A DNA stretch of 64,000 bases, taken from NCBI GenBank assembly GCA_009103225.1, contig RHPI01001737.1, positions 607,131 through 671,130 on the forward strand, in the 5' to 3' direction. Source of the stretch: Chlorokybus atmophyticus. Lineage: Eukaryota > Plantae > Mesostigma and Chlorokybus algae. Shown here in pieces: positions 8,544 to 36,070 of this stretch. A program made the translations under genes and the position numbers. Positions within the stretch are counted from its first letter, which is position 1. Each line of letters starts with the position of its first letter. The notes below the pieces were generated by a model. The model was not told the origin of the DNA, did no database searches, and was given only the letters and a program-made list of their open reading frames with translations.

Positions 8544-8759
8544 TACCATATCGATGGTACCAAAGTACAATTGTCTTGAGGCAAAACTTCCATCGTATCA
8601 TATATTGGTACTTGTCCCAACTCACCGCCACCGCTCGTCCCTAAGCTGGGACTGATAAGTCACTTGCTTGCCATTTTGATACATCACCCTCGCAAAATGC
8701 TATATGATCGGTGGTCGGTCGTATTAATCGAGTGGAGTCATGCACATCAATGAGTGTGT

Positions 8760-9847
8760 AGGTGTTTCCTTGTGTGCACAGGCGTGTGACAGTGTGTGCG
8801 CGTGCGCGTGCGCATGGTGTGCAGTGTACATGCGCGTGCATATGCGTGTGTTTGTCTCACTTTGGCAAGAGATGTAAAGGCTGCCTTTCCCCGGGAATCT
8901 AAGTATTTACTGAAAAACCTGGGATACTGCTCATCTGCAGAGTGCGTGCTCAGAAGCTGCAGCATTACATAGCTTGCAAAACTGTCACAAGATTACTTGG
9001 TCATTATCTCAAATGGCAGCGACACAGCCGGCCGGTGTGTGGTGTGCGACCAGTGCAAGCAACCGATAATAGCAGCGTGAATATTAGGATGGCATGCCTA
9101 AATTGCGGGAGGAGAAGCCAGAGGAGGGGGTGAGCACCCGACAGCTGGCAACGGAGGGCGATAAGGTATGCCTTGCATGACGCATGCGTGTAGGTGAATT
9201 GGCTCTACGCATGGAAGACGTGTATGTATCCATCTCTACAACATATGCCTGCGCGCTAAGACACACATCACTACCAGTGCTGTAAATTGTAGGGACAAAC
9301 GAGGCCAATTCATTTGGTCCAGTTTTTGACATTAAGTCCAGTTTTTGACATTCACTGACAAAGCAGCTTGGCAAACCGTTGCAAAAGCTCTTTTACCAAA
9401 CATTGCGAAGCGTTTGGAAGACAATGCAGCCGCCCGGTAATTAAATTTTTTAACCTACTGCAGTATACACGACTCACACGCAAGAGCATGCATTGGCGAG
9501 CATGGCATGGGTGTAAGTGCATTATGCACTGTGCATGTAACCGCATGCATTGCGCAACCGAGTTGTTTATCACATGGAAGGGCAGAGTACTCAATACTTG
9601 GGTTTTACAACACGCATGAGCATTACCTGTTCTCTTAATACCATTAAAACCCATACGCGCACGTCAACAATGTGAGAGGCTAGCGCATGCACTGGCCGCA
9701 CGGCAGCGAACGCAGCCACTAGATGAGAGTGGCCAGCGACACTCAGACTTCCCCTGGTCGCACCTCATACTTGACTTTGTTCACAAAGCCGACACATGTA
9801 GGTAGCTTGGAGGACAGGGCACCTCCCCCGCCGCCATCGCCGCTCAT
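8760..9847 (-). pseudogene. Degenerate paralogue of the C-terminal-half LOX gene (32633-35160)
   Basis: Homologous exons: ALSSKLPTCVGFV (exon 1), KRAFATVCQAALSVNVKNWT (exon 2), AYVVEMDTYTSS (exon 3), LLSTHSADEQYP (exon 11). Lesions: a duplicated AATGTCAAAAACTGGAC creates TAA after NWT, the His motif is decayed, exons 4-10 are deleted and the last exon is absent. Confidence 0.9.
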
Positions 9848-11101
9848 GAGGAAATTGCTGCACCAGCACTGCCTAGCCCGGCGGTTATATATAGAAAAGT
9901 TATGTCTGCAATGCGTCGTCTTGATGGAGGACAAAATAGAGGGATGCAAAACCACTGGTCGCGTTACTCATGCAGGTGGCGTCATCTCATTTTTGTGTGT
10001 GTGTGTCCTCGCGGACAAGAGAACTTTTCCTCCAACCGAGAATTGTCCGGCCCACCAGGTGGGCCGCGTCGCAGGGCGGTGGGTCGCCATTAGCAACAAT
10101 CATTACAAAAAAGCATCCACTTTTTGACACGTGCAGTACCTTCAAGGTACTACCTTGCAGTCTTGAAAAGAGCATAACAGGCGCATGAGCTGCAGTGCTG
10201 CACTGCCAGTGCAGCTGCTAAGCATGTTGCCTTTTGCATGAAGCTATCAGCGCGTGCAACACCTACCGGTATGTGACGTGGCAATGTGCATATGATATCG
10301 CAGTGGTCAACTACCTTAGCGCCATTACATGGCGGCTCGCGCGCGCGCACATCACGCCGTTAGCTCCCAGGTCAATGTGCTGCCGGCGTGATGGGGGAAT
10401 CCATCAAGGGAGTTAGTCAATGCCAAAGTGAGCGCATTCACGTTTGCATTGGGTTTATGCGTACAGCAGGGTACAAGTTAACGGCTCTGAATTCCTATCA
10501 GCAGCCAGCGCTGGGAGTTGGCCAGCAAGTCGCTGGCAAGCTTAGCATTGCTGACTAGTCGTACAGCAAGCCTCAGCTGTCAGGTGTACAATTCTTCTGG
10601 AACGGTGTGAACGGTAATACATGACATTCGTTTCAATGTAAACAAGTCGTCGTATACCCGTGGCGAGGTATATACATATCATACTTAATAAGGCCTGTGA
10701 AACAAGGGGAATGCACGCAGCATTTGCCAGTCCATCGCAAAATGGAAATGACGGACGGGACATGCTAACCGATGAATTCTATCAGGCCCGACATCGGTAT
10801 TTGTAGGGCACACATCCAGGCTGACTCGGGTGGCGAAACAGTCTGACAGCCGATGACAAAGCCTGAGTTACGTCTCCGAGAGAGAACAAAAACACGCGCA
10901 AGTGAAACCGCGTGTTTGTCCCTCCTCCCCAACACCGATGGCGCGGTCGCAACTCAATGATCATATGCTTATAAGCAAGACGGGGCGTGCTGCAGGGCAA
11001 GCTATTTCTTGTTTCCCTGCATGTAGACGTTCGCATTGGCGTGGGCGTCCGGGGCGGCGGTGGGTGGTACAGCGGTGGGCGGGTGGGCGTGCGGGGCGGC
11101 G

Positions 11102-16891
<5,790 letters not shown>

Positions 16892-24886: not shown

Positions 24887-31020
<6,134 letters not shown>

Positions 31021-32632
31021 TGCAGCCCCGCACGCCCACCCACCAACCGCGGTCCCACCCACCGCCGCCCCGGACGCCCACACCAATGCGGACAACAACA
31101 CGCAAGGTAGCTTGCCCTGCAGCAAGCCCTGTCTTGCTTATAAGCATGACATTTGAGTTGCGACCGCTCCATCGTCATGTGGGGAGCAAGCACACGGTTT
31201 CATGCACGCGTTTTTGTCTTCTCCCTCCGGAGTGCTGCAATGACGCAGCTCAGGATTCGTCGGTTGTCAGACTGTTTCGCCACCTGAGTATGCTGCGAAT
31301 TATAATACTTAGCGCTAGAAAAGCTGATCTAATAGAGGCGTGCCTTCCAAATGTAGTATAAGGGTCCTAATACTGAAATGTAGTATCAGTGATTTGCTGA
31401 ACAGCAATTGCTGCATGAAATTGCGTTGGTCACGCCGTGACAAACCAGTATTGAAGGCAGCCCCTGATAACGCAAGCGTTCCTGCAGTACTATCAAGAAT
31501 GTAGGTCTACATCTGACAACTGAGGCTGCCCATGACTAGTCAGCACTGCTCAGCAATGGGCAACAAGTTGCTGACAGCGTCACGTGCTTGAGGCTTGCTG
31601 GCCGGCTCCAGCTGCTGACAGCGTCACGGATAGCACAACTCAGCCTCTAATGTTGTGCCCGCATAGATTGCTATAAACATAACCCATAAGACCATTGCAA
31701 ACATGACTGCGCTCATTTTGACGAATCCGCTCCACGCCGGCAGCACACTGACGGTTAAGCATGAGAGCCGCCGCCGTGTTGTGCACGTGAGTGCACATTA
31801 CGCGCAAGTGAGCAGCCATTATGGTGTTGTCATGCACCACGGCGACATTATCATGCACATTACGCGTTGCACACTGCATTGCGCTAGTACCGTAATGACC
31901 AAAATTCTACGTATCAAGAATAATAGTAATACAACGCTCTTATTACGTAAATTCTATTGGAACGCACTATTAGTTTAATGTACAACGAATTGCCGGCAAC
32001 CGGGCCGCGCGCCTCGCGCGCCTATCAATCAGTGCATTGATTTGCAGACAGTATACATAAACAGTCGCGCGCTTCTTATGTTATCTCTGAAACAGACTGT
32101 ACGACGGCATACGAAGTGAAAACTAATACGAAGAAGTATTTGACAAGTTGGTCACTAGTCGAATGACTCACTACGGTACTCAGCAAATAGCCTTATGCAG
32201 AAGGCATCATGCTTACAGCAGTTGCACTGCTTCTCATGCAACGGTTACCATGGTCGTATGCTCTTTTCAATACCGCACCCTGTATCTCTCACAAGCAGTC
32301 TGCACGTGTCAAATCTTGTAAGATACTTTCTTGTAAGAAAATTGTGTATTGTATTTCATTGCTGCCACTAAGCTTTACAAGCTTAGTGGCGACCTGCCAC
32401 CCTGCTGAGCGGGACCACCTGGTAGGGGCCTACCATATGACAAGGAACTCACTGTTTCCAACTAGAGTATGGTACCTGCCTTCTTTTCCGAAGCAACAAA
32501 TGAGATGACGCCACCTGCAAGAGCAACGCGGTTTTGTCGTCTTATATCAGAGACACATTTTAAACATGTTATATTCATCAGACTGTCTGCCCGGGCAGTG
32601 CAAGTCAGCAGCAGTTTTCCTCATAGGCGGCG

Positions 32633-35160
32633 ATGGCGGCGGCGGCAGCAGCGGCGGCGGCGGCGGGAGCTGCCCTGTCCTCCAAGCAGCCTACACGTGT
32701 CAGCTTTGTGAGCGACGTCAAGCTCAAGGTGAGACTAGAGGAAATGTGACTGTCGCCGGCCGCTTTCACCTGATGGCTGAGCCCGCTGCCCTCTGGCCAG
32801 TACATGCGTTGGCCTTCTGGGTTGTTAACGTGCGCGTGTTTACAAGAGTAGCAAGGAAACAAGTGGAGCTCATGCAGGCTGTTGATTGCCCGCTCCCAAA
32901 GCCCTGACCTCGCGTGTCATGAAGAGTTCTCAGACGCGCAATGCATGGTTGTCTACCCATGCCGCCTGCTCGCCACCACAGACATGCTCCTGCAATGGCG
33001 TGTGTATTCGTATTCATAAGTCGTGTGCACTCGCAGCACGTCAGCAGCAATGTTAGTCTCCGGGAAGCTGCACTCCTCCCGAAACGCTCCACAGGATGCG
33101 GCAAAAGAGCTCCAGTGGTCTGCCAGGCTGCTACGCCGGTGAATGTCAAAAACTGGACCTGGCAGCTGGCGAAGGTGAGAGAGACTGGCTTGCCTTGTAA
33201 CTTCTTACAGCACTGGTAATGATACACCTACCTTTTCACGCAGGCATATGTTGTGGAGATGGACACACACGTCCACCAGGCGTACAGCCATTTCACCTGC
33301 ACGCATGCGGCGTGCGAGGCATACCTCATCGCCCTCCGTCGCCAGTTATCAGGCGCTCACCCCCTCCTCCGTCTCCTCCTCCCACACTTCAGGCATGCTT
33401 CCATCCTTCAAATCACGCTGCTCTCATCAGTTGCTTGCACTGGTCGCACCACACACCTCTCTCTCGCTCACTCCATGCATGCACAGGTATACACTTGCAA
33501 TCAATGCAGCAGCGAGGGGACAGCTTATCAACGCAGGCGGCATCATTGAGAAGACGTTTGCTGCGGGAAAATATGCTCTCCCACTTTCCGCAGAGCTCTA
33601 CAAGTACGGTGTTGGTCTTTGAAGTTGTTGTCAATGGCTTGTTGCTGACAAACGAAGTATCGTGCTCATCTGTGTCTGCTGATGCAGAGGTTGGCGCTTC
33701 TGCGACCAGGCACTACCTCAAGACCTGGAGAACAGAAGCTTGACTCTGCCAGGTAGGTCATCAATAAGCAGTAGATTTGCAAGTAGACATGCAAATTGCT
33801 TAAACCAACCCATTGCTTAACCACTTACACACTTGATCACTCACTCATGTGCTGTGTGTGCACAGACAATCTTGTTGACGAATTGGACTTGAAGAAGCGA
33901 GCTGAAAGCGGTGTTCTCCCCTATTTTCCTTACCGCGACTTTGGACTCATCATATGGAAGGTGAGTGCATGCGGGTGCTTCAGACTATCTTCTCCTGCTC
34001 TAGCTGTTTAGCCCAACCTCGCACCATCTCTCCTGTTGGCAGTGCATTGAAGACTATGTGCGCGACTATGTGAGCAAATATTACAGTTCCGATGAAGACG
34101 TACTTGTGAGTAACCAGCTCACGGCAGATATTGTGGCTTTCTTTCGCACTTGTTCTACTAGTAGCCGTGTGATGAACGCAGACATGCTTGACAGGGTGAT
34201 GAAGAGCTGCTGAACTTCTGGACTGAAGTCAAGGATGTGGCACATGAAGGTAAGTCACCTGTAGCACTCTCCATGCAGCATTATTGAAGGCATTACATCT
34301 GTATAATTCCAAGTGTCATTGGGGCTTGTAGAGGCCGATCCTTCGGGGTGGCCTCCACTGGCATCAACATCTGATCTTGTGCGCATCCTCACGATCATGA
34401 TCTGGTCCGGAAGCGGCCTGCACTCCGCCATCAACTTTGGCCAATATGACTATTCGGTGAGAGGCCACTGCATGCATGTAAACGTCTGGATTTGACATAG
34501 GGTGATCTCTGAGCACGCTCTCACACTGCACCCTTCAGAGTTTTCCCGGGGTGCAGCCCGCGACAATGCACGCTGCCATGCCTGAGGTAGGAGACAACAA
34601 TGAAGATGGTGACAATGTTGTGGTGGATGAAGAGTTCTACATCTCCTCCCTTCCGAATGTCACCGATTCTGGCCGTGTCGCTGCCACTGTTGAGGTGATT
34701 GCTTGTACTCATGCGCAACCAAATATGTGCACAATTACTCACGCAATCTGGTGCTGCAGCTTCTCAGCACGCACTCTCCAGACGAGCAGTACCTGGGCTT
34801 TTCTAGTGTTTACTTGGATACTCAGGGAAAGGAAGCCTTTGCAAATTTTACTCAGGTGAGACAAACACATGCGTATGCAGTCATGTAGACTGTACACCAT
34901 GCGCACGCGCATACAAGTCACATGCCGTCGCACAAGCAAACACCTACGAGATGCACACGCATCAATGAAACTTGGCATGAACATGCCTCCACTCCCTTAT
35001 ATTTGTGCAGGCAATTGTTGATGCTCAGAAGACAATCAAGCGACTCAACAGCTACTGGTCGGACAGTGACAAACGCCTGGTGCCATACACATACCTGACC
35101 CCACGCTATGACGCCGGTGCCGATGTCGTCCGCGGCATCCCCAACAGTGTGTCCATATAA
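32633..35160 (+). CDS. LOX: C-terminal-half lipoxygenase with its own plastid transit peptide (434 aa, 12 exons)
   Basis: Exons 32633-32728, 33037-33174, 33244-33392, 33487-33603, 33688-33752, 33866-33960, 34043-34105, 34195-34249, 34332-34456, 34539-34694, 34760-34855, 35011-35160 sum to 1305 nt, open. Motifs WQLAKAYV..HQAYSHFTCTH, PHFRYTLAINAAARGQLINAGGIIE, LHSAINFGQY and C-terminal GIPNSVSI. Confidence 0.92.
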
Positions 35161-35914
35161 ATGTCATTGCACGAGTGCTAAGAGAACTTAAGGCCGTGAA
35201 CTGTTTTGTTATATAGACGTCTCACCTTGCAAGACATACATGTTAGGATCTTGAGCGTTTGCATGTGCTTGTTGCAATAGACTCCAACTCTCATCTTGTC
35301 TGAAACGCCGCTATTCATATAGTATACATCATGATGGCACATTCACACACTAACTCAGCAGATTCTGCTTTGATAGCGATGACGGAGTTGCACCGCGTGT
35401 TGCGTATGCTAACAGGCATGGCTGGTGTTACTTGCTTTTCACCTGCGCGCACAGTGATGTAACACTAGGTAACACTAGCTAGTACAGCTGCCGACAACAG
35501 TGATGTGACACTAGGTGACACCTAGTGTCACATCACTGTTGTCGGCAGCAGTACTAGCTATACTGGCAGCACTCTCGAGTCGCAATGTAAGCAAATGTGC
35601 GTTACGTATACCCTGTAACTTACAGGCAGCATTCCGCCTTCAGCATAAGTGCCCTGCAATAGAGCAGATGGTGCAGGGTATGAACGTCAAAGGCATTGAC
35701 TGAATATAGCCGTGACGCTGGCAGCAGCCAGCAGCTAGGAGGCTAGACGGCAAGTCGCTTGCAAGCTCAGATGGCAAAACAGTCAGCCCATGCATGACGT
35801 GATTCAGAGCTGCGTCTCCCAGACTCAGAGACCAACGCGAGTACATATGTGCTTGAATTTCGTGGCTGAGAGCTGCGTATACGGGTAACACCTCTCTTCC
35901 CTGATGACGATGTC

Positions 35915-36070
35915 GGTTGCATGCTTATAGGCTTAGACAACGGGTTTGCTGCAGGCAAGCCATGTTTGACCTGCATGTTGCCCCCGCCTTGGCGTGGGCG
36001 TCGGGGAGGGGGTGGCCGGGGCGGCGGTGGGTGGGAGAGTGGTGGGTGGGTGGGTGGGCGTGCGGGAGCA
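35915..36070 (+). promoter_or_regulatory. Third, orphan copy of the 5' leader region of the fusion genes
   Basis: ATGCTTATA..GCTGCAGG.CAAGC..GGCGTGGGCGTC..GGGGCGGCGGTGGGTGG..GGGCGTGCGGG matches 10965-11100 and the reverse complement of 31025-31147, but the ATG exon does not follow. Confidence 0.65.

Follow-up and report, generated by a model that had tools for sequence, protein, structure and literature searches.

Can a lipoxygenase (LOX) be encoded as half a protein? To our knowledge, LOXs are treated as single-chain enzymes with an indivisible catalytic domain. We analysed a 64,000-nucleotide (nt) stretch of DNA from the green alga Chlorokybus atmophyticus (the window; eukaryotic, with short GT-AG introns), in which a plus-strand gene at 32633-35160 encodes a leader that is not LOX-like and, after it, only the C-terminal half of a LOX, the half that binds iron. 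We call its product the half-LOX. A sequence-only reading of this locus had described the same architecture and taken it for a very short, stand-alone LOX; the observation is confirmed by the gene model and RNA junctions given below, and the interpretation is partly supported. The smallest active forms of LOX described keep sequence ahead of the iron helix; the half-LOX codes for the iron half alone. Either some 370 residues suffice on their own, or the LOX fold is rebuilt from two chains, and a matching front half encoded next door favours the second possibility.

The gene consists of 12 exons, which join into an uninterrupted frame of 434 amino acids with the C-terminus GIPNSVSI. Exon 1 (32633-32728) supplies the ATG and the first 32 residues of the leader, an alanine run followed by SSKQPTRVSFVSDVKLK. 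Exon 2 (33037-33174) encodes the rest of the leader (H33-Q62), a candidate processing site, VVCQA↓A (the arrow marks the cut; A63 and A64 are encoded at 33127-33132), and, from W72 (33154) onwards, the motif WTWQLAK. The exon sequence around this junction reads MAAAAAAAAAAGAALSSKQPTRVSFVSDVKLK / HVSSNVSLREAALLPKRSTGCGKRAPVVCQA↓ATPVNVKN, then WTWQLAK followed by AYVVEMDTHVHQAYSHFTCTH. Exon 3 (33244-33392) encodes the helix with the iron ligands H94 and H99, and the intron after it (intron 3, 33393-33486) has a GC-AG splice pair, with its joint present in RNA from two runs. Exons 4-8 (33487-33603, 33688-33752, 33866-33960, 34043-34105 and 34195-34249) include A137 and L141, exon 9 (34332-34456) encodes LHSAINF with the ligands H290 and N294, and exons 10-12 (34539-34694, 34760-34855 and 35011-35160) lead to GIPNSVSI, I434 and the stop codon. 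The RNA evidence comes from spliced contigs of two independent studies, X1 (2013) and X2 (2021), over 30000-35600. All junctions from exon 2 to exon 12 were seen in both, and the junction between exons 1 and 2 (32728 joined to 33037) was seen in X2, whose sole mismatch to the genome within the gene is a synonymous C>T at 33078. The 3' untranslated region (UTR) of 145 nt (35161-35305) ends at a poly(A) site, where the X2 contig stops at 35305 and continues as 22 A. The half-LOX is thus the product of a real nuclear gene, spliced and polyadenylated, in which a non-LOX leader precedes the iron half of the enzyme. This gene is highly expressed, and its contigs are deeper in each run than those of the neighbouring gene, with the caveat that contig depth cannot rank genes.

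LOX homology begins, as the sequence-only reading had proposed, within about eight residues of the candidate processing site. It is demonstrable from W72 (WTWQLAKAYV), 8 residues past VCQA↓A and at about residue 477 of the 839 in soybean LOX-1, and in a multiple alignment WTWQLAK (W72-K78) falls on the WxLAK motif of the family. Exon 3 corresponds to residues 484-532 of 839 in soybean LOX-1 (PDB sequence match, E 6.5e-8) and to positions 335-383 of 673 in Pfam PF00305 (E 5.9e-14), and exon 9 to positions 515-553 of the same profile. Exons 3, 4 and 9 each pass the PF00305 gathering score (E 5.9e-14, 7e-11 and 1.2e-11, respectively), only at positions 335-553, and the half-LOX overall corresponds to positions 335-673 of 673. 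With nothing in the half-LOX before position ~327, it is short of a complete LOX catalytic domain (PF00305 1-673), to which the N-terminal helices that shape the channel entrance belong. The PLAT/beta-barrel domain, a feature of plant and animal LOXs that is optional in bacterial ones, is likewise absent from the gene. The closest full-length relative is the 885-residue LOX of Chara braunii (GBG92868.1), residues 518-885 of which match half-LOX residues 60-434 at 41.7% identity; more than 60 LOXs match the same half-LOX residues in blastp. LOXs of Spirogloea and Klebsormidium are also among the closest proteins found, as would suit a streptophyte alga. AlphaFold models the first two iron histidines of the Chara LOX on a single helix of 42 residues (529-570; pTM 0.79 for the model) that follows a beta-hairpin, and the W72 motif aligns with residues 529-536, so that the half-LOX is cut at the first turn of the histidine helix in this model.

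The leader itself has no significant match to a LOX profile. Scored against a profile of the 70 residues preceding WxLAK in 47 LOXs, it reaches -1.6 bits, a value equalled by 228 of 300 shuffles; the tail of the neighbouring gene's LOX part scores 18.4 bits on the same profile. A LOX-derived origin of the leader, for which a resemblance of PVVCQAATP to xVYTPxxP had been considered, was rejected because its profile score is no better than that of shuffled sequence.

The iron site, by comparison with known LOXs, is complete. LOX metal ligands comprise three histidines, an Asn, His or Ser, and the carboxylate of a C-terminal Ile or Val (PMC13059375, PMC11765052). The five ligands listed by the sequence-only reading all lie in conserved columns: H94 (codon at 33289-33291, plus strand), H99 (33304-33306), H290 (34421-34423), N294 (34433-34435) and the C-terminal I434 (35155-35157). 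Among columns conserved at 88% or more in 24 LOX C-terminal halves, the half-LOX keeps 44 of 48, within the range of 41-48 kept by genuine LOXs; the four changed positions are Y209F, D214F, W249F and G257A. L141 stands in a family-conserved Leu column, and with the offset of the exon-3 match kept fixed, A137 pairs with soybean A542, which we take to be the Ala/Gly stereocontrol position. Alanine at this site goes with S-specificity.

What does the leader do? Its 62 residues include 15 Ala, 10 Ser and Thr, 9 Lys and Arg and 2 Asp and Glu, giving an isoelectric point of 10.6 (4.9 for the mature part), a composition typical of transit peptides (rich in Ala, Ser and Thr and in Lys and Arg, poor in Asp and Glu) and not diagnostic of them. 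The sequence-only reading had described a typical plastid cleavage motif; VVCQA↓A is an inexact match to the stromal motif (I/V)-x-(A/C)↓A, with Val at -4 and -5 instead of -3, and VVC↓Q fits the left side only. Identity to a pseudogene copy of the gene (described below) jumps from 63% to 81% exactly at VVCQA (42 nt; Fisher p=0.06 versus the leader part, 0.03 versus introns, with small numbers), a hint that the constrained mature protein may start there. A chain beginning at A64 would have 371 residues, in keeping with the ~370 expected, and one beginning at A63 would have 372 and a computed mass of 41.6 kDa; our searches support the claim that this is shorter than any LOX found in the databases and papers covered. 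The leader is consistent with plastid targeting, an assignment that draws on plastid LOXs of the green lineage such as LiLOX (PMC6587457), and would also be compatible with a mitochondrial presequence.

If only the back of the enzyme is encoded here, where is the front? Searches by tblastn with three full-length streptophyte LOXs found no front-half LOX sequence on either strand at 31.1-33.0 kb, and 31122-32617 has no RNA coverage in any run, which bears out the statement of the sequence-only reading that no LOX exons lie in this interval. No RNA contig joins front-half LOX exons to the half-LOX. The same searches placed front-half exons in two other genes only, at ~13.3-15.0 kb (plus strand) and ~29.5-26.9 kb (minus strand). 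The latter belongs to the divergent neighbour of the half-LOX gene (24887-31054, minus strand): left of 31122 the exons are flanked by CT..AC introns, marking a minus-strand gene, and its minus-strand spliced contigs reach 31054. This neighbour is expressed in the same runs (X1 and X2) as the half-LOX and encodes a presequence-like N-terminus (87 residues, 14 Lys and Arg, 3 Asp and Glu), a PLAT domain (a weak match, E 6e-4), the front half of a LOX as far as 26904 and, in the same exon, a P450-like module.

The two front-half genes end their LOX part in the same way, with (V/T)PS...WTPAR, after which the same exon runs into non-LOX sequence; past WTPAR there is no profile match to the LOX helix. 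A degenerate histidine helix at this place, hinted at by MAFFT and tblastn, was rejected for want of such a match. The halves are complementary, overlapping only in the 5-7-residue W-x-x-A-K/R motif that closes one (WTPAR) and opens the other (WTWQLAK). Each front-half gene keeps 15 of the 17 positions that are invariant in 18 full-length LOXs; in the neighbour, one of the remaining two shows K to R and the other is unaligned or lies in intron-derived translation. Half-LOX and neighbour thus hold complementary, non-redundant parts of one fold, are both expressed and have kept the residues that define the fold. The P450-like module carries ExxR, FNPYR and the Cys pocket GRQCPG, and these motifs, together with Pfam hits below threshold, faintly suggest a P450 identity. 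Between the two front-half paralogues, synonymous divergence (dS) is 0.09 and the ratio of nonsynonymous to synonymous divergence (dN/dS, omega) is 0.67 over the LOX part; just past the junction the values are 0.57 and 0.06. As an observation in its own right, this uneven dS (14445-14990 versus 27353-26790) suggests recent gene conversion limited to the LOX part. An intron of the neighbour also contains a (GA)n microsatellite of ~1.2 kb (27930-29110) with one N, which may mark an assembly gap.

These results describe an old rearrangement in which a LOX gene was severed where the helix with the two iron histidines makes its first turn. The back half gained a new 5' end, consisting of exon 1 and the first 39 codons of exon 2, which encodes a basic, Ala/Ser-rich and acid-poor presequence. 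The front half, which comprises a presequence of its own, the PLAT barrel and the earlier half of the catalytic domain, became fused within one exon to the P450-like module next door. Based upon this arrangement, we hypothesize that the half-LOX is a catalytic chain that pairs with the front-half/P450-like product of its neighbour, both in the same organelle, so that the LOX would be tethered to the P450-like enzyme; we put this reading at a little under an even chance. The two chains would reach this organelle by import, and the plastid is its likeliest identity. There the half-LOX, processed near VVCQA↓A to a chain of ~41.5 kDa, would bind the neighbour's front half non-covalently to form a complete LOX catalytic domain. 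The iron site and the greater part of the substrate channel would come from the half-LOX; its partner would add the entrance to the channel, a barrel that binds membranes and a tethered haem enzyme able to take the fatty-acid hydroperoxide directly. A single active half-LOX gene would serve both front-half/P450-like paralogues. A bolder version, in which assembly of a naturally heterodimeric LOX would at the same time create a channelling complex from LOX to P450, is one that we advance tentatively, as somewhat more doubtful than not. That a partner is likely needed is suggested by analogy with coral 8R-LOX, in which the substrate carboxylate lies near Arg182 (PMC13059375): exon 3 matches 8R-LOX residues 378-419 (chain 3fg1), and Arg182 lies ~200 residues earlier, which makes the front half a contributor to the channel entrance.

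Several points weigh against this proposal. The association of the two chains is proposed from sequence and context, and plastid targeting of both the half-LOX and its neighbour is drawn from composition only. Pfam p450 is the top hit of the P450-like modules at E values of 0.11 and 0.0017, below the gathering score, and a phmmer search of PDB sequences with the module found nothing. No half-LOX orthologue from another species with which to gauge selection was found in the protein collections searched, and dN/dS between the front-half paralogues is uninformative given the uneven dS (0.09 versus 0.57). At the 5' end, the X2 contig begins at ~32637, inside a GCG repeat, which leaves the ATG and the 5' UTR uncovered; the TTTTCCTCATAG followed by G directly before the ATG is a possible splice acceptor or, alternatively, a pyrimidine-patch promoter. 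A TAG in the same frame stands 9 nt before the ATG.

A first alternative, which we consider unlikely, is that the half-LOX is an expressed relic, or has taken on a new role other than dioxygenation (for example, it might bind iron or lipid, or be decaying), perhaps transcribed from a shared bidirectional promoter. A sister copy has indeed decayed. This half-LOX pseudogene (8758-9844, minus strand; blastn and alignment) comprises exons 1-3 (9844-9034, matching 32647-33457 at 70% identity) and exon 11 (8964-8758). Its ATG, its leader, the VCQAA..VNVKNWT stretch and exon 3 survive; a stop comes right after VNVKNWT, there are frameshifts, one of them in exon 3, and exons 4-10 are deleted. Because the pseudogene shares the junction between leader and LOX, the truncation predates the duplication, as the sequence-only reading had argued. 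Each front-half gene stands head-to-head with a half-LOX copy, across gaps of 1.6 kb and 1.3 kb, and this arrangement at both loci indicates that the pair was duplicated as a unit. Between the half-LOX gene and the pseudogene, identity is highest in exon 1 (84%) and exon 3 (85%), followed by the stretch from VVCQA to NWT (81%); intron 1, intron 2 and the leader part of exon 2 each stand at 63%.

The changes at four conserved positions (Y209F, D214F, W249F and G257A), the lack of an orthologue with which to demonstrate purifying selection and an assembled isoform with five upstream ATGs would all suit a relic. Yet the split came before a duplication after which the introns diverged to 63% identity, and the half-LOX still has an intact 12-exon frame, all of its ligands and a LOX-like level of conservation. 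Exon 3, at 85% against 63% for the introns, was constrained after the duplication. Since the ligands and 44 of the 48 conserved positions were kept while the duplicate became a pseudogene, the half-LOX has not decayed.

A second alternative, the one implied by the sequence-only reading and in our view rather improbable, is that the mature chain of ~371 residues folds and oxygenates fatty acids alone, with the neighbour functionally independent. All ligands and the conserved C-terminal-half positions, including A137 and L141, are intact; the transcript is abundant; and both helices with side-chain ligands, as well as the C-terminus, lie in this half (PMC11765052; Chara AlphaFold model). Bacterial mini-LOXs show, moreover, that a LOX can do without the barrel and part of the N-terminal sequence beyond it (PMC10177866, PMC13319228), and like them the half-LOX is shortened, keeps the iron site and lacks the N-terminal barrel (PMC10177866, PMC13319228). 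How far the shortening goes is what separates them. Characterised mini-LOXs are of 45-52 kDa, including the 455-residue NsLOX of Nostoc sphaeroides and forms of 49-52 kDa from Anabaena and Nostoc (PMC10177866), and the mini-LOX of soybean LOX-1 is a 60-kDa tryptic fragment (PMC13319228). By arithmetic, a 455-residue mini-LOX would have ~90-125 residues before the histidine helix, and CspLOX2 of Cyanothece (569 residues) has ~246 before the segment that matches exon 3 (PDB 5med), against ~8 in a mature half-LOX of ~41.5 kDa. The half-LOX thus falls outside the mini-LOXs, understood as barrel-less, self-sufficient catalytic domains of at least 45 kDa, which is the lower bound of all the characterised examples that we found cited. 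No activity of a LOX piece this short was found in the literature searched. The contribution of the front half to the channel entrance (8R-LOX Arg182, PMC13059375) also speaks against a self-sufficient chain, and the retention next door of a front half with its invariant residues would be hard to explain if it had nothing to complete. The context argues instead for a split enzyme, with the missing half in the divergent neighbour that ends in WTPAR.

Database relatives lend the stand-alone interpretation no precedent. The 434-residue product is absent from both collections searched, a library of 1.84 billion representative proteins and a word-indexed protein collection queried with the Chara C-terminal half; an exon-3 query gave 71 hits, the best at 41.7% identity over the C-terminal half. 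Hits of 330-520 residues were considered as other natural half-LOXs and rejected as contig-limited fragments and truncated isoforms or models that cluster with full-length LOXs (all of those of 330-450 residues are fragments of full-length LOXs), and in none of the 330-520-residue relatives is a leader joined at WxLAK. Literature searches found no comparable protein, no description of this Chlorokybus LOX, no split LOX and no LOX-P450 fusion; the papers covered deal with mini-LOXs of 45-60 kDa and with AOS-LOX fusions of the catalase type.

That the 5' end is mis-modelled, with front-half exons supplied from elsewhere, or that two genes were wrongly joined in the assembly, is highly improbable: no contig covers the ATG or the 5' UTR, and a splice at the acceptor-like TTTTCCTCATAG before the G that precedes the ATG would stay in frame, but the junction of leader and LOX lies inside exon 2 and is found both in the pseudogene and in RNA of two studies, in-frame stops precede the ATG of the X1 isoform, 31122-32617 is without RNA in any run and without LOX-like sequence, nearby front-half exons exist solely on the opposite strand or at a distance of 16 kb upstream, where they are continuous with a P450-like exon of their own, and any upstream exon would put the 62-residue Ala-rich leader in the middle of the fold.

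How does a two-chain LOX compare with known systems? The half-LOX resembles plant and streptophyte LOXs in its iron ligands, the WxLAK...HQxxSHxxxTH helix, LHSAINF, the GIPNSVSI C-terminus and the alanine at the A542-aligned position; unlike them, it lacks the PLAT barrel and Pfam positions 1-334 and has a presequence directly before the histidine helix. The LOX gene of Chara has no introns and no neighbour called within 10 kb, and the Chlorokybus half has 11 introns. There is no P450 neighbour at the Chara or the Klebsormidium LOX that would point to an ancestral LOX/P450 pair, and the idea of an inversion is neither supported nor refuted by these loci. As in the catalase-related AOS-LOX of corals and cyanobacteria, the proposed complex would couple a LOX to a haem enzyme acting on its product (PMC3925239, PMC5617202). 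In AOS-LOX, however, a complete LOX domain lies C-terminal to a catalase-type AOS in a single chain, whereas in Chlorokybus the LOX is cut in two and the P450-like haem module sits on the iron-free front half. The plastid LOX2-AOS-AOC complex of Arabidopsis offers another parallel, in that a 13-LOX is assembled with a CYP74 P450 for channelling; its members are complete, separately folded enzymes rather than complementary fragments of one fold (PMC6627107).

If the two-chain proposal is correct, this would be the first natural split LOX as far as our searches reach, and it would mark out the smallest metal-binding module of the fold. The consequences would extend to LOX engineering (minimal or split designs), to the control of substrate entry by the front half and to the wiring of oxylipin pathways in a streptophyte lineage that is among the furthest from land plants.

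An alternative first exon of the half-LOX gene lies at 32763-32947 (plus strand) and is joined to the same exon 2 in an X1 contig (32947 to 33037). It ends with an in-frame ATG (32945-32947), preceded by in-frame stops, from which a product of 403 residues, M followed by HVSSN..., could be read; the five upstream ATGs of this isoform would make it a poor template for translation. It may reflect a second promoter inside intron 1, or it may be an unproductive isoform.

The 1.6-kb intergenic region shared by the half-LOX and its neighbour contains a 33-nt island, AAATGAGATGACGCCACCTGCAAGAGCAACGCG (32498-32530 versus 9960-9992; no strand assigned), that is 94% kept in the upstream region of the pseudogene (blastn). 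Outside the island the intergenic DNA no longer aligns between the two copies; we regard the island as a candidate promoter element for the two divergent genes. At its 5' end the front-half gene has a G-rich region (31027-31148), of which a ~71% inverted copy lies at 35920-36066, just downstream of the half-LOX, so that the half-LOX gene is bracketed by a weak inverted repeat, which is of low complexity and may be due to chance. Nearer to the half-LOX gene, ~170 nt past its poly(A) site, lies a near-perfect palindrome of 85 nt (35476-35560) that is 96% self-complementary.

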